Assembly: GCA_000708835.1 (NCBI GenBank) | Contig: DF237247.1 | Location: 45,021-109,020, forward strand | Length of the DNA: 64,000 nt | Direction of reading: 5' to 3' | Source of the DNA: Klebsormidium nitens | Lineage: Eukaryota > Plantae > Klebsormidiophyceae | In this document: positions 8,044-33,400 of the stretch, one piece after another | Layout: every line of letters starts with the position of its first letter | Numbering within the stretch: position 1 is the stretch's first letter | The notes under the pieces: model-generated | What the model saw: only the letters and a program-made list of their open reading frames with translations | Told to the model about the DNA's origin: nothing | The model's database searches: none | Translations under genes and position numbers: made by a program

Positions 8044-10694
8044 GGAAGGAGTCAGAAGGTCGGAAGCTTGCTCAGCGTCATCCACGGTTGCGTGTGACCT
8101 TCTCACCTCTGCATCTCATGAAAGCATCGCATGCCGTTACCAAACATGCACGCGGCAGCTGTGCTATGTTGGCTTTTGAGTACATAGGTTTTTATCAGCC
8201 TAGCCTTTCGTCGAGCAATGTATTGAAGACTTGCTAGGCTGCTTCACCTGTAACCCCTTTATTCGCTTGGCCTTTTGGCCTTCGCTGACTTGAACGAGAT
8301 CGATCTCGGCGAGGTCAGCGGCGCGGCTGGCTTGGCGACCGTCTGGGCGTTCTTTTTGTTTATGCCCGATCACTTAAGCCTGTAACTCTGCCAGAGGCCG
8401 GTTTGTCACATGAACTAATATTAAAAGCGACGGCGGCTCGAAGATTATATGCATGCGGGGCGGCCCGGGATCATTGTGGCATGACCACGTCGTATAAAAC
8501 ATTGACTGATCATTTATGGCCGCGCCCGGCTGCGCACATGCATGCATGTGATCGGGTGTACCGTACATCCGGACACGCACAGGCTGAAACGCGCGAGCCC
8601 CCTGGTGGCGCCAATGATATCTCACGTACATGCCTACACGAATGATGGATCGATAGATCAAATATGGCCGGTGCACTGGCATTCAGTGTCCGGCCAGAAC
8701 TGCATGATACGATGGCGCAATTGAATATGTTCATGACGTACACTCGAGAGCGGAAGAAGCCTTCTTCACTCAATTGAAGTGCAATCAGTGAATCACTTTT
8801 TCTTCGAAGAAACGTTTATGATCATAAACTTATTTCATAAACTTTATAAGAAGCAATTACGTTCTCTTTACGAACTTATAAGACTGAGCCTCTGTGAGTC
8901 AGGGCTTGGCGCAAGTGTTGCGAGTCAGATCGCGGCTCAGCTTAATTGGTTTAAGCTGAGCACATTATTTGGGAAGCTAGCACGTTCGCTCAGGCTTCCG
9001 AATGTACACTGCTAACTGATGACGGTCGATCTTCGATCAGCGACAAACCGTTTCTTAGTTGAATGTTTCGATCTATGATACTATAATTCTATAAATTATG
9101 GCAACTACAAGACCGCGTAAGGTTGAATCTCTTTTTACGATGCTTACATGCACGTCAGCTTTGACTTCTTAGAAAGCACCCTACATGGGGTCAACGTACT
9201 TACTTACGGACCGCGACTTGTTCCTTATGTACAACGGACATTAGGGCCGATTTGCAGTTTAGTCTCAATACGTATCCACCATTTCAATGGACCCTTCAAA
9301 TGCTAATTTGTGGAAAGCAATTGACAGATTAGGTTTTTTGCACGGAACCAGTTTGTACACATGCCTGACCATGACGCTAGCTTAACTTCAAAAAAGGTAG
9401 GCCTTCACGCCTTTCGTCCTGTGTACTCCCAATCGTCCTGCTTAGCCGATGCCTTCGGTTGGATTCAACGGTCCGGTCGACCCAAGCCTGGAAACCAGAA
9501 GATGGAAACGCTTAATATAAAGTAAACGGAAGATCATGGTGGTTCCCGTATAAGCGTTGGCTCGAACCTTTTCAGGGGAGTCAAAAAGCACAGAAGCATT
9601 AGTGTTTGATATGTCACCGAGCACCTTTAGACCGACGACAGCCTGTGATACATGATTATTGAGGAGTGTCGCTCGTCTGCCTCGGTCTAAGAGTTCGCTA
9701 TAATGTACAGAGAGTTTCAGTAAAAGTTCCGTCGTGATACATGAGAAGGATCAGAACGCATTCTGCTGTAGTGGCCTAATGCACGCCCCTTCGTCTGTCT
9801 CTCAAACCGGCCGAAATGTCCCATTTGATAAAACGGGAAAAGGTTTTGAAACGGAGGACTGGTTCTGGAGAAGCATAAGGTCAGAGCAAAAGCTTCGCGT
9901 TTTGACCAGAGGGTCCAGCAAGGTTTGAAAGCTCACTTTGTGCCGTTGGTAAATGGACGTCAGGGGCATTGGAGAAACGCCGAGCCCGAAGATCGAGTTG
10001 CTAACCAGCCAGGGAACCCACTTGTGGAGCGTGGACTGCAGTGGGTTTGTTAGCGGTTAACAGCGTCATCTTTTAAGGATGACCGGTTCTGTTTCTGGGC
10101 TCCTTTGATGGGTATAGAAGGCCAGCATTTGAAACGGCTGACCCTACTTGTGGGTTGAAGAGCGTCAGCGGCCTTTCAAAGCATGGCTGACGGCAGAATT
10201 ATGTTGCTATTCATTATTACTATTGAATGATTAAATTGAACAAAGTTGCCCAAGCTCTTGACACCACACTCTTGACACCGATCGAAGGACGGCTTCGAAA
10301 GCGCCCGATCAAGCACGAACGCCAGACAAGTCTACTGGTGCCTCCGGTATAGAAGAATGAAATGTTCAGAAGCCTGAGAAGATCATCTGCGCCAGAGAAA
10401 TAGCAATTCTAAGACAGCCAACAGCACGGAAAAGCAGCGCTACAACGCGCATGCTCTTCTGGAGATTCCATGTGACAAGCAACGTGAGGCAACAAATTGG
10501 GGAAAGCCAGTTGATTCGAGGATTAACCAGGGATCGTCATGTCCTATAACGATCATACTCCCCTACATGACAGCATGAAAAGAAACAAAGTAAGAAAGCT
10601 CATAATGCGCAGCCCACCTGCACTATGGTTCGTACGCTGCTCATAGCGTATAGGAAGTCGCTCGCCGCGTTTTGGGACTCGGAGAGGTCCACCA

Positions 10695-11420
10695 GGGCGT
10701 GGCCCTCAGGGACCCTTAGCGCGGAATAGCGCTCCAGCACGCCCGGTAGTTGCCCCGGTTCCTCCTGCAGAGAGCAGGATTCCGGTTCCGGTGGGCGGAA
10801 CAACAAACGGAACGCTACCGGAACGAAGTTGAAGCAACTTAGGGCGTGGCCCTCAGGGACCCGTAGCGCGGGAGAAGCGCTCCAGCACGCCCGGTAGTTG
10901 CCCCGGTTCCTCCTGCAGAGAGCAGGATTCCGGTTCCGTTTGGCGAAACAAAAAAACGGAACGCTACCGGAACGAAGTTTGAGCAATTTAGGACGTGGCC
11001 CTCAGGAACCAGCGCGGAGAAGCGCTCCAGCACGACCGGTAGTTGCCCCGGTTCCTCCTGCAAAGAGCAGAGTTCCGGTTCTGTGAGCGGAAGGACGACG
11101 AACGGAAAGGAAGCATTAGAACTGCGGTTCCGTTGGGCGGAACAACAAACGGAACGCTACCGGAACGCAGTTGGAGCAGATGACGACGTGGCCCTCAGGG
11201 ACCCTTAGCGCAGACCGGTGGTTGCCCCGGCTCTTCCTGCAGGCATTTAGAGTTGCGGTTCCGTTGAGCGGAAGGACAACGGAAAGACACCGGAGCAAAT
11301 TAACGGAGCGCGGCTTTTGGAGACCCGTAGCGCAGAGAAGCGCTCCAGCTCACCAGGTAGATACCCCGGCTCCTCCTGCAAAGATCAGAAGTGCGGTTCT
11401 GGTGGGCTGAAAAGCGACGA
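10695..11420 (-). repeat. Five tandem ~145-180-bp units, each an acceptor plus the 5' part of monooxygenase exon 10764
   Basis: Minus-strand (c/t)tgcag|gaggaaccggggcaactacc acceptors at plus coordinates 10765 (real), 10913, 11058, 11237 and 11376, with divergence increasing away from the real exon. Confidence 0.9.
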
Positions 11421-11554
11421 CCAGAATGCTACCGGAATGACAGGGGGGCAGCATTACAGAGCGCGGCTTTGTCCACGAGAGGCTGCCCAAGCGCGGCCGC
11501 GTCTTGCTTTCTTCGAAGGATGCGTAAATTGTTTACAACAAGCGATACGCAAGG

Positions 11555-12110
11555 CGCGTCGCTCTCCATGTGCGCGAGCAGCTGCGCGACTGCGGCCGGC
11601 GTGTCGAACAGCATCCCCTCAATTCAGAAGGTAGCGCGTTGCTCAGGTTTTCACAATGTCCACGAACGGGCGCGCTCGCGCGGCCGCGTCCGGCGTTCGT
11701 CCCTTCAAGCTGTCTTTAAAAGCGCAACAAAAGTGCGCCGCTGTAGTCCCACCAGTCCGCGAGCAGCCGCGCTCACGCGACCGCGTTCCGTGTTCAAAGG
11801 ATTCCTGTCGTCTGGAAGTACGCAGCCGCGTCCTGCGTTCGTCCCTCAAGCGCTTTGTGAGAAGGAACTAGTAAAACGTGCGTCGCTTTGGTTTCCCTCA
11901 TGCCCTTGTGCAGCATCCCTACGACAGGCGAAACAAAAGGGCGCCGCTCTAGTTCTCACCATGTCCACGAGCAGCTGCGCTCGTTCGGCTCCGTCCTGCG
12001 TCCTTCACTGTTCGCAAAGGATCGAAAGAAAAGGGCGTCGCTCTAGTTTTCACCATGTCCGCGAGCAGCTGCGCGAGCGCGGCCGCGTCCTGCATCCCGA
12101 TGTTGCAGCC
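11555..12110 (-). repeat. Four degenerate copies of the 3' end and donor of monooxygenase exon 12054
   Basis: Plus-strand caccatgtcc(g/a)cgagcagctgcgc-like motif at 12051 (real) and about 11957, 11748, 11651 and 11564. Confidence 0.75.
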
Positions 12111-15100
12111 CTGCCCCAGGTTCGGCCCCGAGCAATGCGCCGCGTCGCCGATGAGAACTGCCTGGCCCCGGGGGTCGTGATACTGGCTGCACTTCAACTG
12201 CAGCGTTGGAACGATTGCGTCACTTGAGCCGTCATTTCCGAATCCTTCATTTCCTTCCGTTCCTCATTGACTCGTTAGCCGTTGGTCTGGGCTGTGTCAC
12301 CTCTCGACAAGATATCGGGAAGTGGGCTGTTCACCTCTCGACACGAAATCAATTTTCGATAAAACCGAACCGTTCAAGGCTTGCGGGCGGAAGTGGGTTT
12401 AAAAACCTGAGACGCTGGAGGAATTGGTACTTTTCCGAGGCCGGAAGCTGCAAGGATTCGCGTTTCTGGATTGTGACATCATCCGCTGTCTTGCTGTTTA
12501 CCAGCTTATCGAATGCTATTCAGCAACAGTCATAGCCCGCAAGAAAGCCCTGAAGCATCCTAGGATTGGTTCTCAATGACACTCCTCAAACGAATGGTTT
12601 ACAGCCACCTCAAAGCCGCGCGCGGGTCGCTGCGCCTTGAGCCGCGCGGCCGCGTCTTCGGGAACCTCGAGCCACGGGAACGTCTCCTCCAGGAACCGTT
12701 TCGCGTCCCGGGGGGTCTGCTGGGCGTGCCATTCCGCCGGAAAGGTTCCGGTCGGCCACTTGAGGATGAACGACATGGATGAATGCTCCGGGTCCGGACT
12801 GCAGGCGATTCCGCTGATTAAGAATCTAAACTCGATCTTCGGATCACGTTGGCCGGAAAAAGGATCAAAATTCAGGATGAGAAAAGTTGAGGAAGAAGAA
12901 GCGAGGAAGGAGGCAAATTTGCCTCTGGTCGGAGGTTAGGAAGAATAGAAGACGAGAAGCACGAGAGAACAAACACACGAGATTCCGTAGCTCACAGACA
13001 AGGAGAAATTGAGGAGATTAGACAGGGTCCAGAGCTTCCCTACGACTCCTCGATTACTTCGCTTTGTTAGGATGAAGCTCCTTCCCGGCGGGGAGTGATC
13101 AAACCACTGGCGATTCAAAGCAACGGGTAGAATGTGAGGAGCACGTATAGAGGAGTTCGCTTCCGTTGGACAATCCCTGCAACTTAGAATAGCCCCCCTT
13201 GAACTTACCTCGTCCCTGACACCGCCAAGCGCAAAGTAACGAAGAAACGAAAAAGGAGACAAACAATACCTAACAACGCCAAGCGCAAAGTTATAATGAA
13301 ATGACAAGGGAAATATACAACCAAAACAGTCTTCTCACATTGGGCTTGGCAGCATGATTCCGTGCAGGCCTTTCTTGCGGTATCCGATGACGATGACGAC
13401 ATCGTGACGTACTTTGGGCGGGACTGGAATGTTCGCCACGACCCAATCGGTTCCCAGGTCCTTCTGCTCGTACTCGAAGCTGGAAGGAACGGGACCTGTA
13501 GCTTAGGGGCCGCTCCGTGTCCGTCTTTCACACAACGTTTTCGTACTTGGGTTTCCCAACCTTATTCGCGGCTTCGTCATTTGGTTCGTTTGAGTAACCC
13601 TGTTCTTCTCCGGTTCGGCAAGCGTGCGTCAAACTAAGCCGAAAACGCGATTCATCGCCTTTGAAAGCCTAGAATTGGTGTGGACAGTCGGAAGCTTTGC
13701 CGCTTTTGGAAGAAGCGAAAGCGTGGAAAGACGTGCAAACCAATCAAGGCTAAGAATCCCAGAGAGATTGACACCGGGTCTGCTCGTGCATAGAGCCGAA
13801 CCTGGCACCGCCCAAACAATCTGTATAGAAAAAGACGTGGCTCTCCAATCGGCATCCGGTTGACAGACTTCTCGTCGTTGACTAAATCCGCTGTGGACTC
13901 AATGTTAATGCCTCCTACCAGAGGGTCGCCCATAACCCAGCGTGGTTAAGGAAGTAACTAATTCAATCTGTGCGACTGTCGGCATTCGAACGATCGAAGA
14001 AAAGCGTTACCTCGGCAGGTGCTGCATGACGGCGCTTCTCACAACCGAGCGCGCCCCATCTGCGCCCACCAGCAAGTCTTACTCCTTCTCAATGTGAACC
14101 GGCTCCGCTCCCGCCGGTGCGGTGTGAATTGCATCCGCTCCCGCAGACGGTTCGCTTAAGTTCCGTTGATCCCGCTTTCCGTTCCGAGATCCGTTCCTTA
14201 TTCTTCCTTCGTCTCCCGTTCCACTTCGCCTTCCGTTCCCCTTCGACAATCCGTTTGCATCTCCGTTCTCCGTCCCGTTCTGGCCGCCTTGATTTTTAAC
14301 TCCCGTTCCGTTTGCCTTTCCGTTCCCCTTCGACTCTCCGCTTCGGTTTCCGGTTGCCGTTCCGTTTTGTCCGCTAAAGTGGCACCGGAAGTCGGGCGAG
14401 CCGGCGAAGCGCGCGCGGCGGCGCTCGAGGTCGACGCCGGTGCAGCGGTGTTCGAAATGGACGTCCAACAGGCCGGAGGCTCCATACCTGATTCCCCCAG
14501 AAAAGGGATAGGTTCCTAACGGCCCTTGTTAGAGCGCAGCAAACGATTTTGCCTCCTTTTGCTCTGCTTCAAGCATAAAGCTTCCTTGGCTGAGCGAAAG
14601 GGCAAGGGTGAAAGGACGAAAGTCCGGCACAAGGTTTAAGCAGAGCGCAGACGCCCTAAAGATTTGATTGCACAGCTAGATCCGCAACCACATAATCGAT
14701 GATGGGACCATCTCTCAAGGCAGAACGGACTAGAACGAAAAGGCCGACACATTCAGAAGCTTCCGGCTCACCAGCGGTTTCAGATTCCAACCCTATCACC
14801 TTGCAAGAGAGGGTCTTGCAAAGAATGTCTATTTCTTCGGCAGCGCAATGTCGAGTTGCGTCCCAGCGCACCTTTCCAAGAGCAGCGTCAGCATTGCGGC
14901 GCACATCATGGCTCGGTCGTTCATGGTTGCGCGCACCTTCTGGTTGGGACGCAGGAGGTCGAACAGGTGTCCGAACAGGTAGATGCTGCGATGATCGATC
15001 TCGATCGCACATGCCTGTAGCCAAAATGACAGCTGTCAGGATCAGCATCTTGTTCTCCAGCACACGACAAACAGAGGTTGAAAAACATGCTATTCTGTCG

Positions 15101-18100
15101 GCCCATGGGTGGAGTAACGGGTTAGGTCTCTCAGTTGATCACTGTGAAACCGACTGAAAAACAGCAGCTGCTGTATGAAACAGCATGTAATGGCAGCACG
15201 TAATGACTCACACAGTGCCTTTCTGGAGCAACCCAAGCTGAATGAAAATACTCGAGAAAACTATCAGAGCTTATGCAGGTGACTGGCCATTCAGGACAAA
15301 GAGGATGCTTGTGCAGAACTTCGGTGAGTGGATCCCGTTGGCACAACCAGCAAAAATGCATAGTCTCAGATGTTCAAGTCCAGCCCAGTTCTTTGACCTT
15401 GACAAAGTGCAAGCTTGTAGTAATAGTTCCGCACCTTGACAGCTGCTCGTGAGCTCACTTTGTTTTGAGCAAGAAAAAAGTGGGACCTCCTCAACAGTGA
15501 AATGCGTCTTTGGCTCACTTTGACAGCTTCCCACAACCCAGGCACTCCTTGGAGGGCCAGCCCTTTGGCGGCAATGCCAATTCAGTACCTACAGCGAGGC
15601 CAGCTTTGAGTGGGTAAGTGAAAGCAATCTCGGACGTGCAGTAGGATTGGCCATTTATGTCCAACTAGTCAGCCAGCTGAGGAGAGGGGTTATGCAGATC
15701 AAGCAAGTCAAGGAGGCCTCTCGCTTTGCTCAAAGGGACGGGCACTTGGAGGTCCTCAGGGTACTCAAGAAACTTCATGGGTTCCATGCATCTGTTTCTC
15801 ACCAGACAACAAACATGCGCTGCAAACCCAATGATCATCTGCGGAGCACCCTATGGAGCACGGTGCCACAGCTGTGTGATTAACATGTTAACATTCAAAT
15901 CCCAACAATCATTGTGAAGATCAGCAGCATTGTCATTCCCAAGCTGCACCTTCCACAACCGATTAGGATAGCCTAAAACATCACTCCCGCACATCATATC
16001 TCTACACCCCAACAATGCCAAAACCCTAGAACCTCAAACCATACATTGCCCAGCCCACCTACGGTGTGTCGGTGGTCGCTGCGCCGTCTCCCGCGGGTCC
16101 TCTGCTCCATCAAACATTGAGATTCTGAATCGCCCATTTCCTTTGTCGAGTAGATAGTGGGCCAAAACAAGGCCTGCCGGTCCTGCCCCTACGATGACCA
16201 CGCGCATGGGCTGATCCGGGCTTGGCAGGCGAGGCCCTGTTTCCTTGTCGCGCACCATATCTATTAAGCCCAATAGGGTGATGGTAACCCGCTTTAGCTG
16301 ACACAAGAAAGCTTCTTCTCAACTAGACTCCAAAACAAGTTAAAGAATGCCTGTCCGGTCCCTTCGAAAAGGGCAATCCGAAAAGAAGACCTCAGGAAGT
16401 TTTCAGATATAAGTGGACCTAGAAAATGTCGAGCGTTTCTCTTGGCGAGGGTATGTAGGGGTGAGCAGATCTGAAGATGTGGTTTTGCAAGGCGTGTGCT
16501 TGCAATGAATTTACGCCGAACCTGCTCTGCCGATGTCCGATCAGCACCAATGCATCTGAAAAAGGATTATGAGGGGATTGCAAGGACAAGCAGAGCAGAA
16601 CATTCAGAGACAGGGTGCTCTTTCTAAAAGCTTGCATCTCTATTGCCACTCAGCAGAGCAAATCTGTGTAATGGTCAGGCCAACAAGCACCCGTATGAGA
16701 CTCCAATAAGACCGATTTGAGTAAAAATTGAAAGTTTCCCATATCTAGCTGACTGGTGGGCAGCTCAATGTGATCAGCTCAATGTACGTTACTCAAGAGG
16801 CAAGAAGGTTGATTTTGACCAGCTTCAAACTTCTGTGTCCGGTTAGGAACAGCTGCCGACATGCCCTGCATTCACTACCTAGCATAGTGTCTTGCTTGGA
16901 CACATCGGTCAGCTTGAATCAAGATCTCCCTGCAAGGTAGAAGCATTCATGGCAGGGATATCTTTCCTATGTCCACTTGTGCCGCATTGCAGGAGTTTCT
17001 CACAGGAGAAAATAGAAGTAGAAGTTCGAGACTGAGAAACCACCTCCAGGACTTTCGCCGTCGGAGGGGTTTCCAAAGCGGTGCATGATCAGATCGTCGT
17101 GTATTATGCACATCAACTCATAAATTTAAAATTACTCTGCTCCGAGATCGAAGCGGATAGCACCAGCAAGCAGGTCAAAACTGTTGTGAAAACGACAACA
17201 CTTCTTTCGACGCTTTCGATACAAACCCGCAAGCGGCGGTCGACGTTGAGCCTGGCCAGTTCTTCCCGGCTTGCTCAATGATGATGACAGCCGGATCTAA
17301 CGACACAACTAACGTCAAGAATACGGAGTGCTCGGGGGACTGCTAGGTTGAGTTTGGTTAGATGGGGTTTTGGGCACATACTACCGGTACATACTACCCA
17401 CTGGGGCAACGGACAAAGTTCCCGAAATAAATTTTGGTAGAGTTGGAGACGAACGATCGAGACCGTCGATCGACCAGAACGGTACCCACCGCCAGGAATT
17501 CGACCAGACGACCCGTACCAGTTGTCCGATACTGGTACGAGGACCGGACCTAGTACCACGACTTCAACCGGGCACTCGTACTAGCCTCACAACCCGTCCC
17601 TGGTAAATTTGGTAGTGTCGAGACTTTACGGTCGGACCGTCGGATGAGCAATCCGACGGCCGAATATGTCTTTTGATCGGCTGACACTGTGCACGCGAAA
17701 ACCCTCCAATGTCACGAACCAACTTTTTAAGCAACCCAATACAACGCTTTCAAGATAACGGAGGCCGCAAACTCAAAAAGGTCACCATGCCGATTGCGCA
17801 AATGTCCACCAAATGTTGTGCTGATTAGTGCCAACATTAGCACGCATATAGACGAGGCTTCATTGCAATTTACAGCTTCTGAAAAGATGGAAAGACCTGA
17901 AAATAAGAGTAGGCTGCCTACAATGCTTAGCGACCCCTAGCTCTTAATCGTGAACATTCAAGACTGCCGTCGGCCGTGCTTCAAAATACGCAGTAAGGCG
18001 TCGCAAAATCACTCTTACAAATTTGACTCCGGCCAAGACTCGACCGGTGACGTCATCAGTTCCGACCGTACGACTCCAATTTTGTACGGCCCGTGGGCCG

Positions 18101-18999: not shown

Positions 19000-19100
19000 T
19001 CAGATAGGCACCCGGGAGACGGGTGGGGTTAGTATGATGGTTAGGGTGGGTTTGGGTGCGAAGCGGGTGATTATCTGGGTTAGGCTTTTCAGTTTGTTCG
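19000..19100 (+). repeat. ~100-bp dispersed repeat, inverted relative to the copy at 33915-34015
   Basis: 19008-19033 gcacccgggagacgggtggggttagt matches the reverse complement of 33981-34006 at 25/26 nt. Similarity continues inward (ggtgat..tctgggtta...tttt.agtt). Confidence 0.75.
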
Positions 19101-19320: not shown

Positions 19321-20302
19321 NNNNNNNNNNNNNNNNNNNNNNNNNNNNNNNNNNNNNNNNNNNNNNNNNNNNNNNNNNNNNNNNNNNNNNNNNNNNNNNN
19401 NNNNNNNNNNNNNNNNNNNNNNNNNNNNNNNNNNNNNNNNNNNNNNNNNNNNNNNNNNNNNNNNNNNNNNNNNNNNNNNNNNNNNNNNNNNNNNNNNNNN
19501 NNNNNNNNNNNNNNNNNNNNNNNNNNNNNNNNNNNNNNNNNNNNNNNNNNNNNNNNNNNNNNNNNNNNNNNNNNNNNNNNNNNNNNNNNNNNNNNNNNNN
19601 NNNNNNNNNNNNNNNNNNNNNNNNNNNNNNNNNNNNNNNNNNNNNNNNNNNNNNNNNNNNNNNNNNNNNNNNNNNNNNNNNNNNNNNNNNNNNNNNNNNN
19701 NNNNNNNNNNNNNNNNNNNNNNNNNNNNNNNNNNNNNNNNNNNNNNNNNNNNNNNNNNNNNNNNNNNNNNNNNNNNNNNNNNNNNNNNNNNNNNNNNNNN
19801 NNNNNNNNNNNNNNNNNNNNNNNNNNNNNNNNNNNNNNNNNNNNNNNNNNNNNNNNNNNNNNNNNNNNNNNNNNNNNNNNNNNNNNNNNNNNNNNNNNNN
19901 NNNNNNNNNNNNNNNNNNNNNNNNNNNNNNNNNNNNNNNNNNNNNNNNNNNNNNNNNNNNNNNNNNNNNNNNNNNNNNNNNNNNNNNNNNNNNNNNNNNN
20001 NNNNNNNNNNNNNNNNNNNNNNNNNNNNNNNNNNNNNNNNNNNNNNNNNNNNNNNNNNNNNNNNNNNNNNNNNNNNNNNNNNNNNNNNNNNNNNNNNNNN
20101 NNNNNNNNNNNNNNNNNNNNNNNNNNNNNNNNNNNNNNNNNNNNNNNNNNNNNNNNNNNNNNNNNNNNNNNNNNNNNNNNNNNNNNNNNNNNNNNNNNNN
20201 NNNNNNNNNNNNNNNNNNNNNNNNNNNNNNNNNNNNNNNNNNNNNNNNNNNNNNNNNNNNNNNNNNNNNNNNNNNNNNNNNNNNNNNNNNNNNNNNNNNN
20301 NN
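19321..20302. other. Scaffold gap (982 N)
   Basis: Run of N. Confidence 1.
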
Positions 20303-23300
20303 ATTACCTTGTACTACGGTAGTAGCTCAGTGGCTGAGCCTGAAACTACTGTAGCTGCGCGCCGCAAAACTTCACCGCACTGCACAGAGCGCACAATAAT
20401 GCTAGCCCTGTGAAATAAAACACATCACGTTGAGCAAACAATCAATGTAAATTAAAGTGTGATCAGCTTCTCTGGTGATCAGCTGCCATAGCCAAATCAA
20501 TGCTTTCTCCTTACCTGCCAGATGCAGGAGTTTCAACGTTTGAGTCTTTCTTGTGTTGGCAACTCTCTGGCGAGCTATAAACCTTTCCGTAAGATGCCTG
20601 CACGTCAAGATTTGCAGTTGAAGAAGCCAAGAGAGAGGCACGTTCCGCTTGATACCTTTGTATAAAACGCCGCGGACCCGAAATTTTTATCGAGGGCAAA
20701 AATGGGGGGGTTTGAAGCACGTTTTGACACGTTTTGAAACAGAGGGATTTGCAGGCCAGAACCAGCCTTCATTTCTTCTCTCCCAAGTTCGCACCCTGAA
20801 AGCTGCAGAACTAGCAAGGATTTGCCTCTTTTGTTTCATTCCTTTATAGGAAACCGCCTCTACCATCAAGCTGCCTAGAGACAAGAAACTAGAACTGGCT
20901 GTGCTAGAACTGACTGCACGCAGCTTGACAGCTGCCAAGCCAGTCATGATCATTGCCTGGTTGTTCTTCACCTGTGGTCCAATGCACTTCCGGAAATCCT
21001 GAAAGAGCCCTCCAAAGCTGCAGGAATTGGTCCAAGTAAATCCAGTCTGACAGTCTCACCGTTTGCCTCAAGGAGTAGGCCAGCTGTAAGCTCAAGCAGG
21101 AGTCGGTGACCACCTCTGAAAAGCCATCAATCCCAAGTGGGCTAGAGCATTGTGGAGTCGAGCGGTAGAAAGCTGGCAGGCTATGTCCGAGGGTCAACAC
21201 AGCAGGTAAGCCCTCTTTTGGTATGATCTGCGAGGTGGGAATTATGATATCTGGACTGCATTCAAAGGTCCTCTGTGCACCCGAATGGGTTTATGAGTTT
21301 CTGTCAAGGCAATTGCAACAGATTGTGAGGGCATTTTAGGATGATTATTGGATTGGAGGTTTTTGGAAGTAACTGGGCGACAAAAGTTGAAGTCACCTCT
21401 TGCTGAGTCGTCCAATATGGCAACCTTTTAAGCATGACCAGCTCAAAGCATAAAGATCTGCAATGGCAAATCGTAATACAGGAGGGCTCTGTTAAACCTT
21501 TTGGTCGGTGGTCTTTGTTGACCCTCAACCCTCCAAGCTCAAGCATGTCCATTTGTGTGCATCTGGGCACGTGTGCACCTCAAAGGAGGTTACTTCAAAC
21601 TTGCTTGTCAATTTGAGCAATTTCAATTGAGCAGAGTAGTAAGTCAATGTCCGTAGAAGTTTTCTGTATAGCAGCAGTCCCCCAGCTGTCTCTGTTGGAC
21701 GGGGTCTTATGGGCTCCTTTTCTTTCAGTTTCTGCAGAAACTGAGGATAGGCAATGTGTTCCACATTTCACATATTCATGATCCATGAGTGACAAATATC
21801 ACAAGAGGCAGCATTTCATCTCTTTGTCTTATGCCGCACACCCCTCTTGAGCTTCTCACTCTGACAGAATCTATGCTTGAGAGCCATAGGACCTTGACAG
21901 CTGTCACAACTGTATGGTGGCTATTCTGCAGGTCTGACTCGCCTCCCCAATTTCTGCACCTCACTTGAGGAGGATTCCTTGGAGCATGGCGCCCCATAAC
22001 ATGACAGAGGGCGGCAGCGCGCCCCCAATGCGCAAGACCCCCCCTCAGGAACGAGCTGAGATCAATGCCACAAAGGGGGGTTTTCTTGTGGCTCAAGACA
22101 ACCAATCATCAAGCCCCCCCCAGAACGAAGCAGATCTCCTCAGCCGCCTCCAAGAGATCGTTTGCAGCCACTGTAACAAAGACGAGGCCCCTCCCGACCA
22201 GCCTCTCATGGCGATGGGGATTGACTCCCTGGGTATGGCGTCACTTTCGGAGTGTCTGCAGAAGGAACTGGGGGTCAGGGTTCCGGTGACGACACTCTTT
22301 GAAGTGCCCACGCTTAGGCTTCTGGCTCGTCACATTGGCCAGCAGCTTTTGGGGGGGTGCACAGTTGGACCCACAATGAAGACTTTCATGAATGCAGAGA
22401 CTGAGAAAGTGCAAAGCTCAGAAACTGTGGGGGTGCCAGAGCAGAGGGAAAGTGACTATGGGAGTGGGGCGATAGCAGTAGTGGGAATGGCGTGCCGACT
22501 GCCGGGAGAAGCAAACACGCCAGAGAAGCTGTGGGAAAACCTCGTTGCTGGCCGCGATTGCATCACTCCTGTGCCGCTTGCCAGGTGAGCCAGCCAGCTC
22601 CTGTACAGTCTTATGGTTTCAACCTGTTTCATTACCAGTTCTCAAGTAATTCCTATTATTCAGGTATAAATTCTGTGAGCTCTCTCCCTGGGAATAGAAC
22701 CAGTTCGTGGACACCCTTTTTCAATCTGGACATTTGGGACACTGTACCTCTATTGTTAAGTTTCTAGCGTCCGGGCAGGGGCCAGCAGCTTAAGTCGTGG
22801 ATGCATGAGTCATGACGCACTTCGCAATCGAGCCCACCAGCCTAATTACCATGCAAACCCACCCATCTCTGGGGCGTAGCTCATAGGCTTATTCTTTGAG
22901 AATTGGTTATATGTATCCTAACCTGGTTGCTCTCCCAAATATAGAACCATCCATATGTTGAACATCAACAAGAGAAGCCGCGCCCATCTTTGCATTTTTG
23001 CAAAGCCAGTGTTCAGGCAGTAGCAAAAACCTTTCGCTTTATATCATCATACAAAGGCTTCTCTTCCTGCAGGTGGGACGTAGACGCAGTCGACCGCAGC
23101 GGCCTCAAGCCCCCACTGGAGCCTTGCCTCGACAAGGGCGGCTTTCTGACAGACGCTGAGCTTCTGGACGCGTCTTTTTACGGAATCACTCCTTCCGAAG
23201 TGATTCCACATGGACCCGCAGCACCGGTTGGTCCTGGACGTCTCAACCGAGGCCCTTCTCGAGGTATGGCCCGTCTCGTCATCGACTCGGTCGTTCTCCG

Positions 23301-24004
23301 TTCTTCTTCATGCATCTTTGCGAGACTCGCTTCGCTCCTCTTTCTCTGGAGACGAACAACCGTATGTGGATTCTTAAGCACGGGAATTTCTTCCGCTTGG
23401 TCGCAGATGCAATTGCAGAGGAGGATGAGTCAGCACAGAGCACAATTGCAACATCTTCGAAACAGAGAGGCCGCCCCTGCATCGTGCCTTGTTTGACGTG
23501 TCCCGGTGCATGTTTCTGCTTCTGCAAACCGTAGGCTTTAACTCAAGACGGTTCTTAATTCGAGGTTCCCAATCCGTAACTGTCTTCCCAAGCCCTTCAA
23601 TTCAGTCCAAATAAGGTTCTCAATCTCGTGCAGATCGCTAATATGCGGCATTCTTAAATCCAGGTAGTAGATTTGCAGCCGAAAGATGAAGAGTAACGTT
23701 CAGTCCAGATGAGAATCATGGAAAATATCCTTGTTTTGGTCTTCCGATTCATTTGCGCTATCTTACCACACACAGACTCCAGGTTTCCTCATTCGTTCCA
23801 GGCGGGTTTTACCAAGGCAACCCTGGCTGGGAGCAAGACCGGCGTCTTTGTGGGCATCTCTAAAATGGAGTGGGGGGCGTTTCCCGTGCACGCCAAAGAG
23901 CCGTCCGCGTACTCCCTCCCGGGAACAGTGCTCTCTATGGCGTCCGGCCGCGTCTCGCGCCTCTTTGACCTTCACGTAAGCCCTCCAAGCTTGAGGGCTT
24001 CGCT

Positions 24005-24019
24005 TGTGTGTGTGTGTGT
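24005..24019. repeat. (TG)n microsatellite
   Basis: tgtgtgtgtgtgtgt in the PKS intron just after the truncated KS exon. Confidence 0.8.
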
Positions 24020-27000
24020 CTTTGTCCGCCTATGAGACGACGGTGATAACCTGATCCTCAAATGGTTGATACCACCAAAGCTTTGCATTCGTGCGAAGAC
24101 GTGCCTTGCTGCGATGTAAGTCTTTGCATCCACATATACACACAAAATTCTACAAGATACCCTTCAAGACAGGGGTACACCTGCGACAGAACACCAGGCC
24201 AAAATTGTCACAGGTTACTGGACACCTCGCCGAGCTCGTTGAGAGCCGATTCTTCTGTTACAGCCTTCTCATATCACTGACCTCAATCTCTTTCAACACA
24301 AGTAAGCGCCTTCAAGCTACCGAAAGTTGTCACTTCTATTGTGTGCTGGTGACTTTCCCCCGGTTCCCCAGGTCCCCTTTCAAGCAGCCCACGGTTGCTT
24401 GCTTTCTCTGAAAATCAAGAAATGACGCCCTCAACATACTCATACGAACGCTGCTGAATTGCAGGTATGCTTGGGACTATTTCCCGGTTTCTCTTCAAGC
24501 CAACCAAGGGGGCTTAGTCTTTCGATCAATCAGAAAGTGAGGCCCTCGACTTACTCATACGAACGCTGCTGGATTGCAGGTGTGCTCGGAGATATCCACC
24601 GGTCGCTCTCCGAGCCGACCAAGGTTGTTTTTTTGTTCCCGGGGCAAGGCTCCCAGTACGTCAACATGGGCCGCGAGCTGTATGAGTCGGACCCAGTGTT
24701 CCGCTCCGCCATCCAGCGGTGCGACGGTATCCTCGCGCCGCTTCTGCCGGAACGTCTATTACGAGTGCTGTACCCCACCGAGGTAAGTTTTCTGTATCCC
24801 CTAGTTAGAGGTTTGGATAAGTGAAGACCCTAAAAACCGGCAATGACAATCAGCGATCCTGTAAGACTCCTCTTGCGGGGGCTGTAGCCCACGTTAGCAT
24901 CGCGGGCGCTTCTTGACTCGATCGTTTTAAAAGAGGTTTCTGCAACGAAAGATGTGCTTACTTCCTAAGCGTCCCACTGGTATGGTAACCGGAGCGTTTA
25001 TATTACAATGATCCGGCAATCGATGGGCCCATCGCTTACTTCGTTGTTCTGGTGCCCAATTGAGTTCCTCAAACACAGACTCAGTACGCACAGCCCGCAT
25101 TCTAACCACCGCCGGTAACAATCCCAAACCTGTCTTCTTAACCCACATCCGCAGGACTTTGCCCCGACGGCAGAACGTTTGATTCACCAGACCCAGCGCA
25201 ACCCGCGATCTTCGCCGTCGAATACGCCCTCGCCCAACTGTGCCTTTCCAAGGGACTGCTTCCGTCAGCCGTTCTGGGCCACAGCGTCGGCGAGCACGCG
25301 GCCGCGTGCGTGGCTGACGTCATGTCGCTCGAGGATGGGCTGCGGATCATGGCGGCCCGGGGGGCGCTCCTGCAGGTACGAAACCCGAAAATAATTAGTA
25401 AATAACCTAAGATAATGACCAGCGTCAACCCTATAAGTGACGCACTCGGCTCCCTTACCGACTGTGATTAGTAAGTAACCCGTCTCAGTGCGACTACGTT
25501 ATCGTTATTTCAGCTTATTGTTATCTTTCTTGGATTTGATCCTGCAGGCGCTGCCGGCCGGAGGGTGCATGGCGGCTGTGCGCGCGAGCAAGGAGGACGT
25601 GGCGCGCGCGCTGGAGGCGGTCGGCTGCGAGGTGAGGGCTTCGATGTACGGGTATCCGAGCGTTCAAGCCGCTCATATAACTACGGACGGATACTCCTCG
25701 AGACATTATCTGGAATGGGTTTCGAGAAGGACCCGAGCTTACCGTTTGGTCGATGAAGGGATTGACATTCTCACCGCGGATTGGGGCATCATGCAGCCAA
25801 ACATCTTCGAAGCAGGCCCTTAAACAGGTTGGAAAACAGGTTGGAAGCACTTGTAACGGATGACAGAGCGCCGTTTCTTGCCCTCAAGAACGGGCCCGCC
25901 GTACGGATCCGTTTGTTCAAGCCAAACCATTCTCGAATGAAACCGACCACATAGCGGTCGTCTCAGGTACGCACTAGAAGCTGTAAAAACGAAAAGGGAA
26001 CGTATCGAAATGGACGACTTTTCGCGGGGCAGCTTGTAATGGCTGTAATCAGACCAGGGGGTACAATTTCAAGGGCAATCGAGGCCCGAGAGGAAAACGC
26101 TTTTCCGAGCGACCTACTCGCAAATGGGGCGCGAATTGCTTTCAATTCGCCGTTCGTTACGCCGGTAGCTCTCACCAAGACTAACATTGCACCTGCTCCT
26201 TTCAGGACGTTTCCATTGCTGCCGTGAATGGTCCCCGCAGCGTCTTGGTTTCCGGTTCCGTTCCGGCCGTGGAGCGGGTCCTGCAGGCCCTGGACGGATC
26301 TAGCAAGCGGCTGAACGTCTCCCACGCCTTCCACTCGCCTCTCGTGACGCCCATGCTGGAGAAGTTTGCAGAAGTGCTCCGGACGGTACGCGTCTTCAAT
26401 ATGTCCAACTTTTGCCGTTTGGTGTGTGCTTGTTTCCCTCTTAGTGCAGATTTGGACTTCGTTATTCTACCCCAAACCCGCTTACTCAAAGCGGGGTGCG
26501 TCGGAAGAGCAGATGACTTGTTATTTGCAGTATCTGCATGTAAACCAGCACAGCAAACAGGAGAACAGAGTCGCTGCGCCGTTTGCGGGCTCGAAACAAG
26601 TGTCTGAAGTGTCTGCAAAAGCAGGCCGCCGATCTTTTCGTCTCAGGCTGGCGAGCTTGTTTTCCTTTACGCTTGCCTTTCCTAATTTGAGGTCTCGTTC
26701 CCTCAGGTGACCTTTCGACCGCCGTCCCTTCCGCTCGTTGGCCTCGTAACCGGGGACCTTGTCGGCCCGGAGATCGCGTCCCCCGATTACTGGTTGCGCC
26801 ACACGCGCGCGCCCGTCCGCTTCCTCGCGGGCGCACGCGCGCTACGCGCCTCCGGCTGCCACGTGTTCCTCGAACTTGGGCCCCAAGCTGTGCTCTCGCG
26901 CCTTGCCCCGGGGTGCGAGCCACCGGAATCCGCCCCTCCAGTCCCCACGTACGCCTGCATGATCGAGCGGAACGGGAGCGGCGCCGCGGCCGCGGCCGAC

Positions 27001-28036
27001 GCGATCGCTTTCAGTCGAAATGCGGCGGATCGCCTCCGGAGCAACGGGGCAGCGGAACAGCGGAGTGACAGCGGAGTGGGAAAGTCACGCGGGGCGAACG
27101 CACGCGCATTTCCTTGGTGGACCGTTCCGCACAAGCTTTTGCAAAGCCGTACGATGGATTATGATGGAGCGACCGTATTTCGGACCATTCTTCGGGGGCG
27201 GCTCAGGGAAATGTGCGCTGCATCCATGACTGTGCACGGGGCGTCTCTACTGGGCGCTTTTTCCTGCCTGGAGATAGCTCTCGCAGCGACGGGGGACTCA
27301 CAACCGGGCGGAACCGAGTCGCCTTTGCTGCTCAGCGGCGTAACTTTCCCCTCTCCGTTTCTTCTTCTCAAGAAAGACAGCCCAACGATTTTCGCGGTCG
27401 TTTCGGAGGGCGGCCGCGGCGTGCAAGTGACGAGCGGCTCTGGACCGTCCAAGAGAGTCCACGTGGCAGCCTTAGTCAAACCGACCGGTAGGAAGCACCG
27501 GGGCTGGTGGAACGTCCCGGTTTGCTCCCCCGACCCAATCGCTCTGGGCTACAAGAAAATCGCCCCGGAACAGCTCGTCTCCGATCTACAAACTCTGGGC
27601 GCAGTGTCTTTCCTCGAAAGCGCGCGCGCGGTTGTTGAGGTTTCCATCGGTGACTCTGGGGCGTTGGCGAAGCTCGCTCTTCCTAGTTCCTCCGAAGGTT
27701 TTGGTATCCACCCAACGCTCCTAGAGGCCTCGGTTGTTGTGGTCGGGGGACTTCTCGCCCGGTCGGGGGAACTTGCTCCGGGGCCCGCTCTCCTGATGAC
27801 CGGAATCGCCGAAGTGGCGTCGCTCGGGGCGCACGCGCTTGGCGCGCGCGCGCGCGCCCGCCGAGCCTCGTTGCTGATGCACGCGAGCGGCTTGGAGACA
27901 ATGGGACCGGGGAGCTTCTCCGCGAACATCGACTTTTTCGACGCGGAAGGGAAGTGGGTGCTCGGTGCACGGCGGGTGATTTTTTGAAGCCGCCGACGCG
28001 GCCGCGTTCCGCGCGCGCGCGGAGCGCGCGCCTTCC

Positions 28037-28084
28037 GCTCCGCTCGCCGCTCCGCTCGCCGCTCCGCTCGCCGCTCCGCTCGCC
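28037..28084 (+). repeat. 12-bp coding tandem repeat x4 (APLA linker before ACP2)
   Basis: gctccgctcgcc at 28037, 28049, 28061 and 28073. Confidence 0.9.
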
Positions 28085-30039
28085 GGACCGGACGCACCGG
28101 AAGAAGAGCCGGAGGGTGAGAGCGCTCCCGAAGACGACCTCCGGGCGTTGCCAGTCAGCGAACAAAAGCCACGCGCCGAGGCGGTGATTCTTTCCGCGGC
28201 GCGAGAAGTTTTGGGCCACCCGGGGCTGGGGCTCTCCGACAGCCTCAAGGACTGGGGGATGGACTCGCTGGTCGCCAGTGAGCTGTGCAACCGCCTGCCA
28301 CGTGGCGCCACGTGGACGCCCGCGGTCGTCCTGCGGGAGAACTCCGCGCGAGCGCTCGCGGCGGTCTGGCTCGGCGCTCGTGCAGGCACTGACGTCAGCG
28401 ACGACGGAGACGACGCCAGCCGCGGGGGGAGCGCCTGCACCGATGACGTTAGCGCGGGCGTCAGCCCGGGGCCCGCTGACGTCAGCGGAGCGGCTCGCGG
28501 CCCCGTGGCGTTCTTGTTTGCGGGCCAAGGGTCGCAGGCCCCGGGCATGGCCCGGGGATTGCTGGCGACCGATCCGGTGTTCCGGGCTGCAGTGGAGGAG
28601 TGCGACCGGATTCTGAGGCCGCACTTGGGGCAGTCTATTATAGACATCATGGCGGTCGAAGTGAGTGTCCTCATTCGCGTTGACCCTTCTGGGACTCCCC
28701 AGTGAATTCTGCAGAATTTCTGCCAAAACAACCAGCCGTGTTGGGGCGGATACGAGTTGGAAGGACGTACAGAAATAGACTCACCGGCAACAAAATGCTT
28801 CTTCAGGCAGTTTTATATCGCCTGTGATTGACAGCTGTGGTCCTTTGCAAATCTTCGTCTGCGTTTTATGCTTTTGATGCATTTTCCACAATGATCAGTG
28901 CAGTAGCTCAATGGCAAGCTGAACCAGTCTACAAATGTCATCTAACCAATTTGGATGCGATAACGACCATAGTATGTCCCGTATCTAATCATGGCAATCT
29001 CGACTTCTTCCAGGACTCTCCAACTACCCCCAGCCCCGTCCACGAAAATCGCTACGCGCAACCCTGCCTCTTCGCCGTGCAATGGGGCCTCGCGCGCGTG
29101 CTCGGCGCCCGGGGCGTCCAACCGGGCGCCGTGATAGGTCACGGCTGCGGGGAATACTTCGCCGCGTGCCTGGCTGGGGTGTTCTCACTGGAAGACGCTC
29201 TCTTTCTCATCGCAACCCGATCGCGTTTGCTGAACGAGTTACCGTTAACCGGGGGCATGGCGGCCGTGAAAGCGAGCCAGGATCAAGTGGAGGCGGCGCT
29301 TAGAAAAACGGAGGGAGAGAAGGTGAGGGGCACACACGCTCCTATTTCTGCGCCGGCAATTCAGCAACATATGCACCGCATAGGCTTGGAGATCAGCAGC
29401 TATAACGATACGAACGATTCGCACGCGTATGTTTCCCGCGCTTTCATCCTGAAGCTGAAACGGACGACAGCGGGCTGCTCCATTTTAGTGCCCACATGCT
29501 TTCTATCACACGAGAGCGCTGTCGGTTAAGTTCTCTGTGGCAGGTCAATTACTTTCAAACGGATTCGTTGTGGGGCCATAGCAGACAGCGCTTTGTGCCG
29601 TTGCCTCTGCAGTCAGTGCCTATGGTTGCGTGCCCCTTATGAGCAGTACTGTTGTCGTGTTGCTGAAGTGGAAGTGCATCCCTGCTACTGATTTGCAGCG
29701 ACTGTTGGGACTGGAGCTCTGCTCTTGTAATGGTGCCACGACAAATCTCTTGAATCTGCGGCGCAACCGCTCCACCTTACTAGGATGTCCCTTATCTTTA
29801 GATCCACAAACAGGGCCACATCTGGAAGAGGCGAAGCGTGCTGGCAGGAATTATTCATTTTGCGTTCTACAAAGCCTGCATGATACTTGGTGTTTAAACG
29901 CTGATCAAGCAACTTCCCGGGTTCCTATTTCCAGGTCTACATCGCCGCCGTCAACGGGCCGTCAAACGTGGTCCTGGCCGGAGAGGCAACGGACTTGGAC
30001 CGGGTGCTCGCCCGGATGAAAGCACCGGCCAGTCGCCTG

Positions 30040-30440
30040 AATGTCCGCCAGGCCTTCCACTGCCCTCTCGTGGCGCCCGCCGTGCCAGAGTTTGCTGCAG
30101 CGCTTCAAAAGGTGGGCCCGGTAGACCCTGAAATTCTACATTCGAGATTCGTTTTCATATTGGAGTACTCGCCGGTTGAAAGCACCGTCTACTCGCCGAA
30201 TCGCCCGTCAGGCCTTCCACTGCCCCCTCGTGGCTCCTGGCGTTCCAGAGTTTGCCGCGGCGCTTCATAAGGTGGGCGCCCAGTGGACCCTAAATCCTAC
30301 ACCCAAGTTTCTAGTCAGATCGGAGTGCTCGCCCGGTTGAAAGCACCGGCCACTCGTCCGCCAGGCCTTCCATTGCCCTCTAGTGTGTTAAGTGGCGCGC
30401 GCCGTGTCAGAGTTCGCTGCGGCGCTTCGAAAGGTGGATT
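30040..30440 (+). repeat. Three tandem copies of the 3' end and donor of PKS exon 29935-30111
   Basis: caggccttcca(c/t)tgccc...cagagtt(t/c)gc...gcgcttc..aag|gtgg with donors at 30112 (real), about 30272 and about 30434. Confidence 0.85.
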
Positions 30441-33400
30441 CGTAGACCGCCCCGCTTAGTCAATTGCAGCATGTACGCACAGAGGGGAAGCTAGTCGCAG
30501 CTAGTACTTTAGACCGACGCAGATTCTGACGGGATCTGCCATAGCTCAGAAACTGCCAATTTCGTAGGACGTACTTCCGTTTTCTGTTCACAATCTTTTG
30601 TAGCATACAGGAGGCGTTCAAACTGCCACCGATTACAAACAAACATAATCTGGCCAGGATTTTTGAGTTCCGTTTTTCATTTCCGGTTTCAGGTCACTTT
30701 CCACCCGCCCACCCTTCCCCTCGCCGACAACGTCTCGGGGGGGGTGGATTCGGCGGCCCTGGCGACCCCCGACTACTGGGTCCGGCAGATGGAGGGCGCC
30801 GTTCGCTTTGAGCGCGGGGTGCGCGCGCTCGCGGGCGCGGGCGCGTGTCGCACGTTCCTCGAAGTGGGCCCGCAGGCGAAGCTCATCGGGATGGCCAACC
30901 AGTGCCTCCGGGCGGAACGGCTCGAGACCGGAAATGGAAACGAGTTTGCATTCCTGACGACGTGCGATCGGACCGGGGAGGCGACCGCGGGCGCCCTAGA
31001 CGCAGCCGCGGCCGCGTTCGCGCATTCATAAGCCGCGGCCGCTCTTTCCGCTGGATTGAGGTTCAGCAGCTTTGGCGATCTCAGGAGAAGGCGGCCAAAA
31101 GTGTTCTTGGAGTACAACTTCTTGTACATAGGGACTATTTTGGAGCGAGATACAGTCGGGTGTTCCGTCTCTCTGGTGGTCTCTTGCGCGGCTTGGCACT
31201 TGAAACATGATAACGTCTTAGTGGGTGTGATATTTATGGATTACGGGATCCGGTTTCGGGGAAATCAACGAATGAAACGGTTAAGTTGGAGAATGAGGTA
31301 GTCCGATGCTTAGGCTATTAAGCCTCGGGTTTAGGAAGTCGGATTGTAGGCAACTTTGCAGAAAGAAAGAAACGTCAAATTTGCAGATGGCTTGAAATAG
31401 GCTTGATGCCTCCAGGACATACTAACAGGCATTTGGAAGTATCGACTTCTCGCTTGGCATTAAGACCTCCGTATATAAGCAGATTAGTTCTGGTCGACGG
31501 TGGCAGGGGATTCGAAACCGGGTATCGAGTCGCGTTACTAATGACTCTCGACTTGTGGTGGTATCGTCTTTACGTCCTCAGGAGGCCCAGGTTCTCCACA
31601 AAGTACTTTAGATGGTTCAAATGATATGTAATTGTCTGAAACCATCCGAATCATTTCAGACGTTTGACTGGAGCGCACCGAGTCCGATGCCGTCAGCGTT
31701 TGGAGATTTCACCAGCGGAAATCAATCACTCCGGCACGCGTCTACAAATGAATTGACATGACCAGAAAATTTGAGCAGATAGATTCTTATCTGCTGAAAC
31801 TTCCGTACGTCGAAGTTTACACCATCACTAAGATGTGGCCGCCGAGCGGCTAGCCTTCGCAGTGGAATCCCGTCCAAACTGATTGTAGTCAAGTCCACTT
31901 GAAACAACGATTGCTGCAGACATTGGCCGACCGTCGATCCATGCAACGTGATTTTTAACTACTGCATGAGCCCTGATGGCAGCTCCGTCCGGAAAACCTC
32001 ATCTGCATCACATAACTGCACGCGCGGCAGGACCGTATCGATCAGTGGCATTCAAAATGATTCCTAGACAAGAGCACTACTGGCAATATGTTAAACGTAA
32101 TCGAACACCACAGCCGCCGAGTGTGAATGATTGTCAAGTGATCAATCGTGCAAACGCTCTGAAGGAAAGTTGGACCGCAAGACACCTAGAGTTTAAGCGC
32201 CGATCGACCCCTGTTTGTGTGAATCCGAAAATAGCTAAAGCTGTCAAACCCGGGCTCAGCCAAAGACAATTGACTTATACACAGACGTGATGATGTCGAG
32301 AGAGGTGCCCACGACGGCGAGGCTGCCCGCCAGCCCGGTCCTCCCAATCGGGACAACGCAGCGCTAATGACAGAAGATTTTGGCTGATTACCAGACTGAG
32401 TCCGACCAGCTCGGGTTATGAAGAAATAACTGGGCTTTAACCTTGTTCCAAGCCGGCTGGTTTCCGGCCCAAATCTGGCTATTGAACACTCAACCGGCAG
32501 TTTTGAAGCAGCCGACAGCCAGCCCATAAGCATCCATGATTAAGCGCCAAAACTACCTGTGAGTCGGGCCGCTAGTTACAATGGCGCTGAAAGGGGGCCG
32601 TTCGAACGTCTTTCCGTGCAGATTGAATATGCTCGTACTCGTCAAAAGGCCGGGCGCAGCTGCCGTGTAGGAATTTAAACATGCACGTACTGGCTGGAGT
32701 TGTCGTCAAAAGTGGGCCTTGCAGGCGTACGGCAGAACTTCGCAATGGTCGAAATCGCAGCGCTACCGTCCAATTCAAACGTAAGGACTCCTTTCTACAA
32801 AGTTTAGCCAGGGGTTACAGCTTCTTTGGCAGGACCGGTTCCAATACTGGGGTTCCGGCAGACCGTGCCTAACCGTAAATGCAAACAGAAGATCTCGAGC
32901 CCATCTCGAGCGTCCATCTTTTACAACGTCACAATCGGAACGGCAGCGCTGCGATACCAATATTGGTCATCCCCCAGCCATTACGGGGTTTTGCGGTCCG
33001 TCTGCTTGGAAGGGGACGCTGAAGACAATCTTCGCGAACGTGCCAGTACGTGTGGTAGACGTCATGATGCTCAGACGGCCCGTGCATCGGCCGTGGAGTT
33101 GCCGCCGGCTCGGATCGCAATTAATTCTCGCGTGGAAACAGAATGGTTGAGGTGCAACAAAGCACTGTACCCAATTGATCAGTGGCGCCAAAACTAGACG
33201 CAATCACCTGGGGGTGCCAGAAGCATGGGCCGGAGATGGATAGAGCTGTCGAGAAACTTGAAGCGATTATCTGCGGTTTTCGCGGATTTACGAGATGATT
33301 GACGACGTGCTCTCGATGACTCGGAGCCTACACCAGCGCTGGCCGAATCTTGGAATTATAGAGATCACCCGATTTCGGAGAAAAGCAGAGATGATCTTCG

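Follow-up and report, generated by a model that had tools for sequence, protein, structure and literature searches.

Type I polyketide synthases (PKSs) of the cis-acyltransferase (cis-AT) kind are known from bacteria as modular or iterative enzymes, for example CurL and the DEBS modules, and as iterative enzymes from algae (Shelest et al. 2015; PMC4661987). The same study counted 0 type I PKSs in Klebsormidium flaccidum and called the streptophytes PKS-free, suggesting that they may never have had such enzymes, chlorophytes having gained them after the split, with differential loss as the alternative. A T1PKS count of 0 was also given for K. nitens (O'Neill 2020; PMC7073580), and we found no report of a type I PKS in any streptophyte alga in the searchable literature; the context given in a preliminary description of the present locus, in which land plants lack modular type I PKSs, holds in this literature. 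Here we analysed a 64,000-nt stretch of K. nitens DNA (hereafter the window; assembly GCA_000708835.1, contig DF237247.1, positions 45,021 to 109,020 of the forward strand), in which a broken type I PKS gene and a broken flavoprotein monooxygenase gene lie head to head. We consider it probable that these are two genuine, fairly young neighbouring pseudogenes in the K. nitens nuclear genome, one the relic of a PKS and the other a duplicate of a gene resembling kynurenine 3-monooxygenase (KMO). The PKS relic is unreported, though a 1486-aa product has been silently annotated on it.

The PKS relic occupies positions 21986-31031 of the plus strand. By Pfam matches (PP-binding twice, the N-terminus of ketoacyl-synt, Acyl_transf_1 twice, and PKS_DH_N) and motifs, it retains the order acyl carrier protein (ACP), N-terminal third of a ketosynthase (KS), first AT (AT1), a domain resembling a dehydratase (DH), ACP and second AT (AT2). 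Exon A (21986-22584), whose ATG is the annotated gene start, encodes an ACP (GIDSL; PP-binding, 2e-14), a linker and the first ~40 KS residues (ketoacyl-synt, 9e-10). Exon B (23073-23263) continues the KS from RWD to MDPQHR, and exon C (23802-23975) extends it to just before the active-site Cys. Beyond a deletion junction (23976-24614), AT1 (24615-26985) is distributed over five exons (24615-24782, 25155-25375, 25548-25631, 26206-26385 and 26707 onward), the last of which is shared between the AT1 C-terminus and the post-AT linker with the DH-like domain (26986-27984). These are followed by a run of six T (T6; 27980-27985), by a segment (27986-28660) that holds a 12-bp (APLA)n repeat, the second ACP (ACP2, GMDSL) and the first part of AT2, with GQGSQ, and by the rest of AT2 (29014-31031; exons 29014-29322, 29935-30111 and 30693-31031), which ends in a TAA stop. 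Each of the ten introns has GT-AG borders and is compatible in phase.

The phosphopantetheine-attachment Ser is kept in both PP-binding domains (2e-14 for GIDSL; 7.5e-06 for GMDSL), and AT1 has the malonyl-type motifs GQGSQ, GHSVGE and SHAFHS. In AT2 both catalytic residues are replaced (Ser by Gly in GHGCGE, His by Gln in RQAFHC), and this domain may be an old non-catalytic one rather than a product of decay. The DH-like region matched PKS_DH_N at 4e-05 and 23.8 bits, under the cut-off of 27, with an HxxxGxxxxP motif that is degenerate by eye, and its Atlas features stood at 0.97 to AT/PKS-DH clusters. Among solved structures, the best relatives of the ATs were the cis-AT bacterial modules CurL and EryA (DEBS-type).

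The PKS has lost the catalytic two-thirds of its KS. Pfam coverage of ketoacyl-synt was limited to positions 3-37 and 103-164, stopping at 164 of 252, and none of the reading frames of the 64 kb contains a KS active-site Cys or His motif. Between exon C (donor 23976) and the AT1 leader ~300-400 residues are missing; because exon C ends at KS position 164 and the next homology is the start of an AT, the lost part must comprise the catalytic core of the KS, its C-terminal domain and the linker to the AT. A 115-bp tandem duplication lies at this junction (24413-24624) and includes PSTYSYERCW, which is similar to a post-AT linker motif. In addition, three frameshifts prevent a single open frame after splicing: a +1 shift at ~23203-23209 in exon B, where 7 nt stand in place of the 6 needed between SEV and MDPQ; a -1 shift at ~25196 in AT1, where the loss of one base parts a 14-residue segment from a 12-residue one; and a +1 shift in the T6 run, between DH and ACP2, as read in the assembly sequence. 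An alternative in-frame splice at the D/E junction, from donor 24811, was rejected in favour of the second frameshift, because the phase-0 donor 24783 and acceptor 25155 match the homologous AT2 intron and restore the canonical L..T..QPA stretch. The ~1,460 PKS codons contain 0 nonsense codons.

Public sequencing data were compared with the PKS. In four DNA runs, all from one sample, 0.53-0.89 of the PKS 31-mers were present. Contigs assembled from two DNA runs (X1 and X2) were compared over 22300-28299 and were identical to the assembly, with 0 differences and 0 gaps, at 22300-25293 (a single 5-kb piece that also crosses the deletion junction), 25311-26800 and 26980-27826; contig coverage was nil at 27900-28299. 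Separately assembled DNA contigs thus confirm the deletion junction and two of the frameshifts (~23203 and ~25196), the T6 frameshift lying in the part that no contig covered. Contig depth in the short-read data fell from ~22 to 0 across 25300-28299 as GC climbed to 0.6-0.7; GC-rich exons of the K. nitens genome were poorly covered in this data set. Among RNA-labelled K. nitens runs (20 runs, eight studies), 0.00 of the sampled PKS words were found, and two of the RNA runs (X5 and X8) gave zero assembled contigs on 22300-28299. No PKS transcript is detectable in the RNA data compared.

The monooxygenase pseudogene lies on the minus strand at 9377-16207 and was modelled by spliced alignment to an intact K. 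nitens paralogue, described below. The model has 10 exons (16207-16059, 15588-15519, 15014-14872, 14487-14011, 13479-13339, 12798-12609, 12197-12054, 10764-10618, 10035-9937 and 9487-9377), 9 introns, all GT-AG, and 556 codons. The fingerprints of group A flavoprotein monooxygenases occur in order (GAGPAG for GxGxxG, then GADG and GDAAH), exon 1 carrying the Rossmann fingerprint by Pfam and the GDAAH exon matching Pfam FAD_binding_3 with E 4e-11. The reading frame is not intact, as it contains exactly two in-frame stops: a TGA at codon 52 in exon 2 (15584-15582), aligned with Ser52 (TCC) of the paralogue, and a TAA at codon 257 in exon 4 (14081-14079), directly before DLLVGADG and aligned with Tyr181 (TAC). 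Splicing around either stop is impossible. As read in the assembly, the gene thus appears to have been knocked out by two point nonsense mutations. Exon 4 also bears a Gly/Asn/Lys-rich insertion of ~75 extra residues relative to the paralogue, built on an 87-bp tandem repeat (14100-14400), and within intron 7 the tail of exon 7 and exon 8 recur as partial, degenerate copies in tandem (10694-12004), among them a 148-bp array at 10694-11092. In the public annotation this locus is divided into two genes, a 195-aa model ending at the TAA and then the 370-aa GAQ86589.1 (KFL_002980120; scaffold DF237247.1, GCA_000708835.1), to which the GDAAH exon is 99% identical. The 1486-aa product annotated over the PKS relic from 21986 has no Pfam hit on record (L002 1-2042); the public locus record, reverse-complemented, ends at window position 24027.

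The two genes face away from each other, the ATGs of the monooxygenase (16207) and the PKS (21986) being separated by 5,778 bp. This interval holds the sole N run of the window, an assembly gap of 982 N at 19321-20302, which lies upstream of both ATGs, at a distance of 3.1 kb for the monooxygenase and 1.7 kb for the PKS. The gap being intergenic, frame continuity across it is irrelevant to either gene; it makes only the intergenic length uncertain, so that the 5.8-kb spacing is an estimate. With every exon peptide of the two genes and the intact paralogue as tblastn queries, we detected no pieces of either gene at 16.3-21.9 kb, the stop-free stretches between 16.3 and 21.9 kb were non-coding in appearance, and a search of the intergenic region for repeats found none. 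Additional upstream PKS exons may be hidden inside the gap. The first observation of the preliminary description is confirmed as a whole, all of its listed elements being present in the sequence: a head-to-head pair of secondary-metabolism-type genes ~5.7 kb apart; a monooxygenase with two nonsense codons and clean GT-AG introns; and a PKS with three frameshifts, a large deletion and phase-compatible GT-AG introns. Its reading of the PKS as one of the cis-AT type is supported as well, by the GHSVGE and HAFH motifs of AT1 and by its nearest solved modules.

The history of the monooxygenase could be read from its relatives. A HMMER search without profile against 1.84 billion representatives recovered the paralogue GAQ88986.1, a 496-aa protein on DF237425.1 that is annotated as kynurenine 3-monooxygenase, as well as homologues from Spirogloea, Closterium, Mesostigma, Coleochaete and a fern. 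In a quick IQ-TREE maximum-likelihood tree, the window copy was sister to GAQ88986.1 (100 SH-aLRT; branch lengths 0.40 for the window copy vs 0.33), and the two were nested in a 99-supported clade of streptophyte-alga sequences (Coleochaete, Spirogloea, Closterium). The two copies share 54% identity, with dN 0.41, dS ~2.2 and a ratio of ~0.18, which is rough, as dS is saturated, making YN00 unusable and leaving NG86 only. This ratio indicates that purifying selection probably acted on the window monooxygenase for most of its existence and that its death is recent. Among solved structures, the ten best matches of the paralogue were all KMO (E 4e-22 to 7e-14, end-to-end over residues 3-421), the next solved family being sixteen orders of magnitude weaker (4.5e-6); KMO was likewise the best solved match of the GDAAH exon of the window copy, and scans of single monooxygenase exons in PDB and NCBIfam did not resolve the subfamily. 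Taken by sequence, the monooxygenase appears to be a native Klebsormidium-lineage duplicate of a KMO-like gene kept in streptophyte algae; its position as sister to the paralogue within the streptophyte-alga clade argues that it was not co-transferred with the PKS. The monooxygenase part of the locus is thus ordinary, a duplicated and recently inactivated member of a native family. The kynurenine route to NAD is described as lost in Viridiplantae (PMC7455551), and despite this the KMO-like family reaches the fern Ceratopteris richardii (KAH7446272.1) and Mesostigma.

The PKS relic, in turn, bears marks of long residence in its host. AT1 and AT2 have 46% identity and, in identical alignment columns, three phase-0 introns in common, AT1 having one extra, so that the AT duplication postdates the introns and points to long residence in a eukaryotic nucleus. 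The GC content at third codon positions (GC3) is 0.74 in the PKS, 0.71 in the monooxygenase and 0.75 in the host paralogue gene, and the PKS exons have a GC content of 0.65 vs 0.49 in its introns. Host-like GC3, a kept exon/intron GC contrast and the lack of nonsense codons together suggest that the PKS was host-adapted and that its decay is young. Pattern scans found no close PKS relatives in IMG/VR, in 185,579 bacterial and archaeal species or in JGI metagenomes, the bacterial and metagenome matches spanning only the generic ~70-residue AT C-terminus at ~50% identity. A word search with the 433-aa AT/DH exon, in entries of 0.55-1.75x the query length and thus with full-length PKSs excluded, gave only two weak bacterial matches, and one with exon A gave no match among the fragment-sized entries (0.55-1.75x query) that it covered. 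These features suggest an old, host-adapted eukaryotic gene, for which any horizontal transfer would be ancient.

We therefore favour a history in which the two genes originated separately. A long-resident, intron-bearing and host-adapted cis-AT PKS (ACP, KS, a lost part, AT1, DH-like, ACP, and AT2 lacking both catalytic residues) would have been killed by the loss of its KS catalytic core and by three 1-bp frameshifts. A KMO-like gene would have been duplicated in the Klebsormidium lineage, and the copy, after a period under purifying selection, disabled by two point nonsense mutations. What the analysis shows is the identity of both genes, their lesions and structures, the paralogy, and the lack of PKS linkage at the paralogue and in the related contigs; from this we infer that the PKS and the monooxygenase had separate origins and that their adjacency is by itself no proof of a shared pathway.

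Several points weigh against this history. The sample or culture behind the DNA runs may be the one used for the genome assembly, in which case they are not independent of it, and the T6 frameshift and both monooxygenase stops are taken from the assembly sequence. The RNA comparison covered the PKS only, and assembled contigs only; the dN/dS ratio is approximate, as stated above; and the length filter kept full-length eukaryotic PKS relatives out of the word search. Finally, lesion densities are similar in the two genes (2/556 codons in the monooxygenase; 3 lesions and one deletion in ~1,460 codons in the PKS), as would be expected of the joint relaxation of a linked pathway in adjacent divergent pseudogenes. 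Plant gene clusters are thought to form when a duplicated oxygenase of primary type moves beside a scaffold-forming enzyme, a setting that the present pair recalls.

The explanation that best survives beside separate origins is that the two genes were a working pair, in which a phenolic or partly reduced polyketide was formed by an iterative cis-AT PKS and then oxidised by a recruited KMO-like hydroxylase, both genes decaying jointly once the product was unneeded. Group A flavoprotein monooxygenases hydroxylate aromatic rings, and a KS-AT-DH-ACP arrangement without a ketoreductase (KR) recalls the bacterial iterative aromatic PKSs. The head-to-head arrangement at 5.8 kb, the similar lesion densities of two young-looking pseudogenes, and the purifying selection that kept the monooxygenase after its duplication at this locus also speak for such a pair. 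However, we found no conserved linkage of PKS and monooxygenase in relatives. No PKS pieces occurred beside the paralogue, whose neighbours are SET-domain and deoxyhypusine-synthase genes, within the fetched flanks (L001, 8 kb upstream), nor did any occur in the fetched parts of four related algal metagenome contigs (L033, L034, L035 and L036). In two of these contigs (L033 and L034) the monooxygenase is 71% identical to the paralogue; that of L035 stands a little closer to the window copy, although its orthology is uncertain, and has PC-esterase genes in the 7 kb upstream of its start. Furthermore, the monooxygenase belongs to a native family that is widespread among streptophyte algae with no known PKS, the PKS gave no RNA contigs, and the putative pathway would comprise just two genes. 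We thus regard a working pair as unlikely. The fuller form of this idea is similarly doubtful, namely that a plant-style pathway of two genes once operated in a streptophyte alga, consisting of an intron-rich iterative cis-AT PKS (KS-AT-DH-ACP plus a further, non-catalytic AT-like domain) and a duplicated KMO-like hydroxylase, and was lost only recently in this strain; if it is true, intact and expressed versions of the PKS and monooxygenase may survive in other Klebsormidium isolates.

Two further explanations fare much worse. The view that errors of assembly or sequencing produced the lesions, and that at least one of the two genes is intact and works, draws on the T6 homopolymer frameshift (27980-27985), which falls outside contig coverage, and on the protein-coding genes of 1486, 195 and 370 aa that the public annotation places here, but it is very improbable given that contigs of two DNA runs are identical across ~23203, ~25196 and the KS deletion junction, that a KS active-site motif is found nowhere in the window, that the annotation was forced to split the monooxygenase at its TAA, and that zero RNA contigs lie on the PKS. 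Hardly any more credible is a recent foreign insert, by bacterial or fungal horizontal transfer or as part of an endogenous giant-virus fragment: the AT domains are indeed closest to bacterial modular PKSs among solved structures, but the ten GT-AG introns, three of them common to both 46%-identical ATs, the GC3 equal to that of host genes, the lack of a viral relative in the IMG/VR scan and the confinement of bacterial and metagenome matches to the generic AT C-terminus all argue against it.

The interpretation in the preliminary description is partly supported. Both genes are real pseudogenes, and its proposal of a fairly recent decay stands, on the 0 nonsense codons of the PKS, the exon/intron GC contrast (0.65/0.49) and the monooxygenase dN/dS of ~0.18. 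The suggested horizontal acquisition of the PKS was not borne out, as the introns precede the AT duplication, GC3 equals that of the host and no close donor was found. Nor was the co-regulated pathway of a PKS and its oxidase: the monooxygenase is placed by phylogeny with the KMO-like streptophyte-alga family (100 SH-aLRT as sister to the paralogue) rather than as a partner of the PKS, the comparison of synteny gave no PKS fragment at the paralogue locus or on the four related algal metagenome contigs, and no PKS RNA was seen.

An intron-rich, host-adapted relic of this kind provides direct evidence for differential loss, in that a type I PKS was long resident in a streptophyte-alga genome and then lost; the PKS fossil favours loss over late acquisition. 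Surveys based on the KS or on antiSMASH miss such PKS fossils, and the absent Pfam record on the 1486-aa product may be the reason that proteome-based PKS surveys missed this one.

In both genes, partial and degenerate copies of an exon often stand in tandem in the intron beside it (window positions 10694-12004, 24413-24624 and 30173-30436), the AT2 intron, for example, holding two extra partial copies of exon K (~30173-30277 and ~30325-30436). Exon copies also occur in introns of the intact paralogue (L001 9787-9843, 13500-13706, 14795-14845 and 15248-15346), and four copies of the GADG exon are present in a metagenomic relative (L035 8375-8985). Such copies are therefore a feature of these genes or of the genome and do not indicate decay. 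The next gene on the right side of the PKS is a 465-residue stop-free stretch on the plus strand (34272-35666), rich in Ser, Pro, Ala and Gly and without a Pfam family. Further downstream, AIR9 A9-domain repeats (Pfam IG_AIR9, 6e-32) at 47881-48393 and 56259-57116 of the plus strand mark an AIR9-like microtubule-associated gene, which fits a streptophyte nuclear region.

Compared with known systems, the monooxygenase shares with the KMO family the GxGxxG, GADG and GDAAH motifs and a KCSxYH stretch preceding GDAAH. It differs in having only ~25% identity to true KMOs, and in the two premature stops and the expanded low-complexity insert of the window copy; the present genes form a clade of streptophyte algae and a fern and are KMO-like by sequence only. 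The pair as a whole resembles plant-style biosynthetic clusters, as a scaffold-type gene and a non-homologous oxygenase are adjacent and divergent, and the oxygenase derives from a conserved gene by duplication and relocation. Here, however, there are two genes only, both dead; the PKS gave no RNA contigs, and conserved synteny was not found in the flanks compared. With the described cis-AT type I PKSs, both bacterial and algal, the relic shares covalently linked ACP, KS, AT, DH-like and ACP domains, the GQGSQ, GHSxG and HAFH motifs of AT1, the post-AT linker motif and the DSL serines of the ACPs. It differs from them in a KS that lacks its catalytic two-thirds, in three frameshifts, in having no KR, enoylreductase (ER) or thioesterase (TE) domain, in its N-terminal ACP, and in a second AT that follows the last ACP and has Ser changed to Gly and His to Gln; and it lies in a streptophyte alga, a member of a group that has been reported to lack such enzymes.

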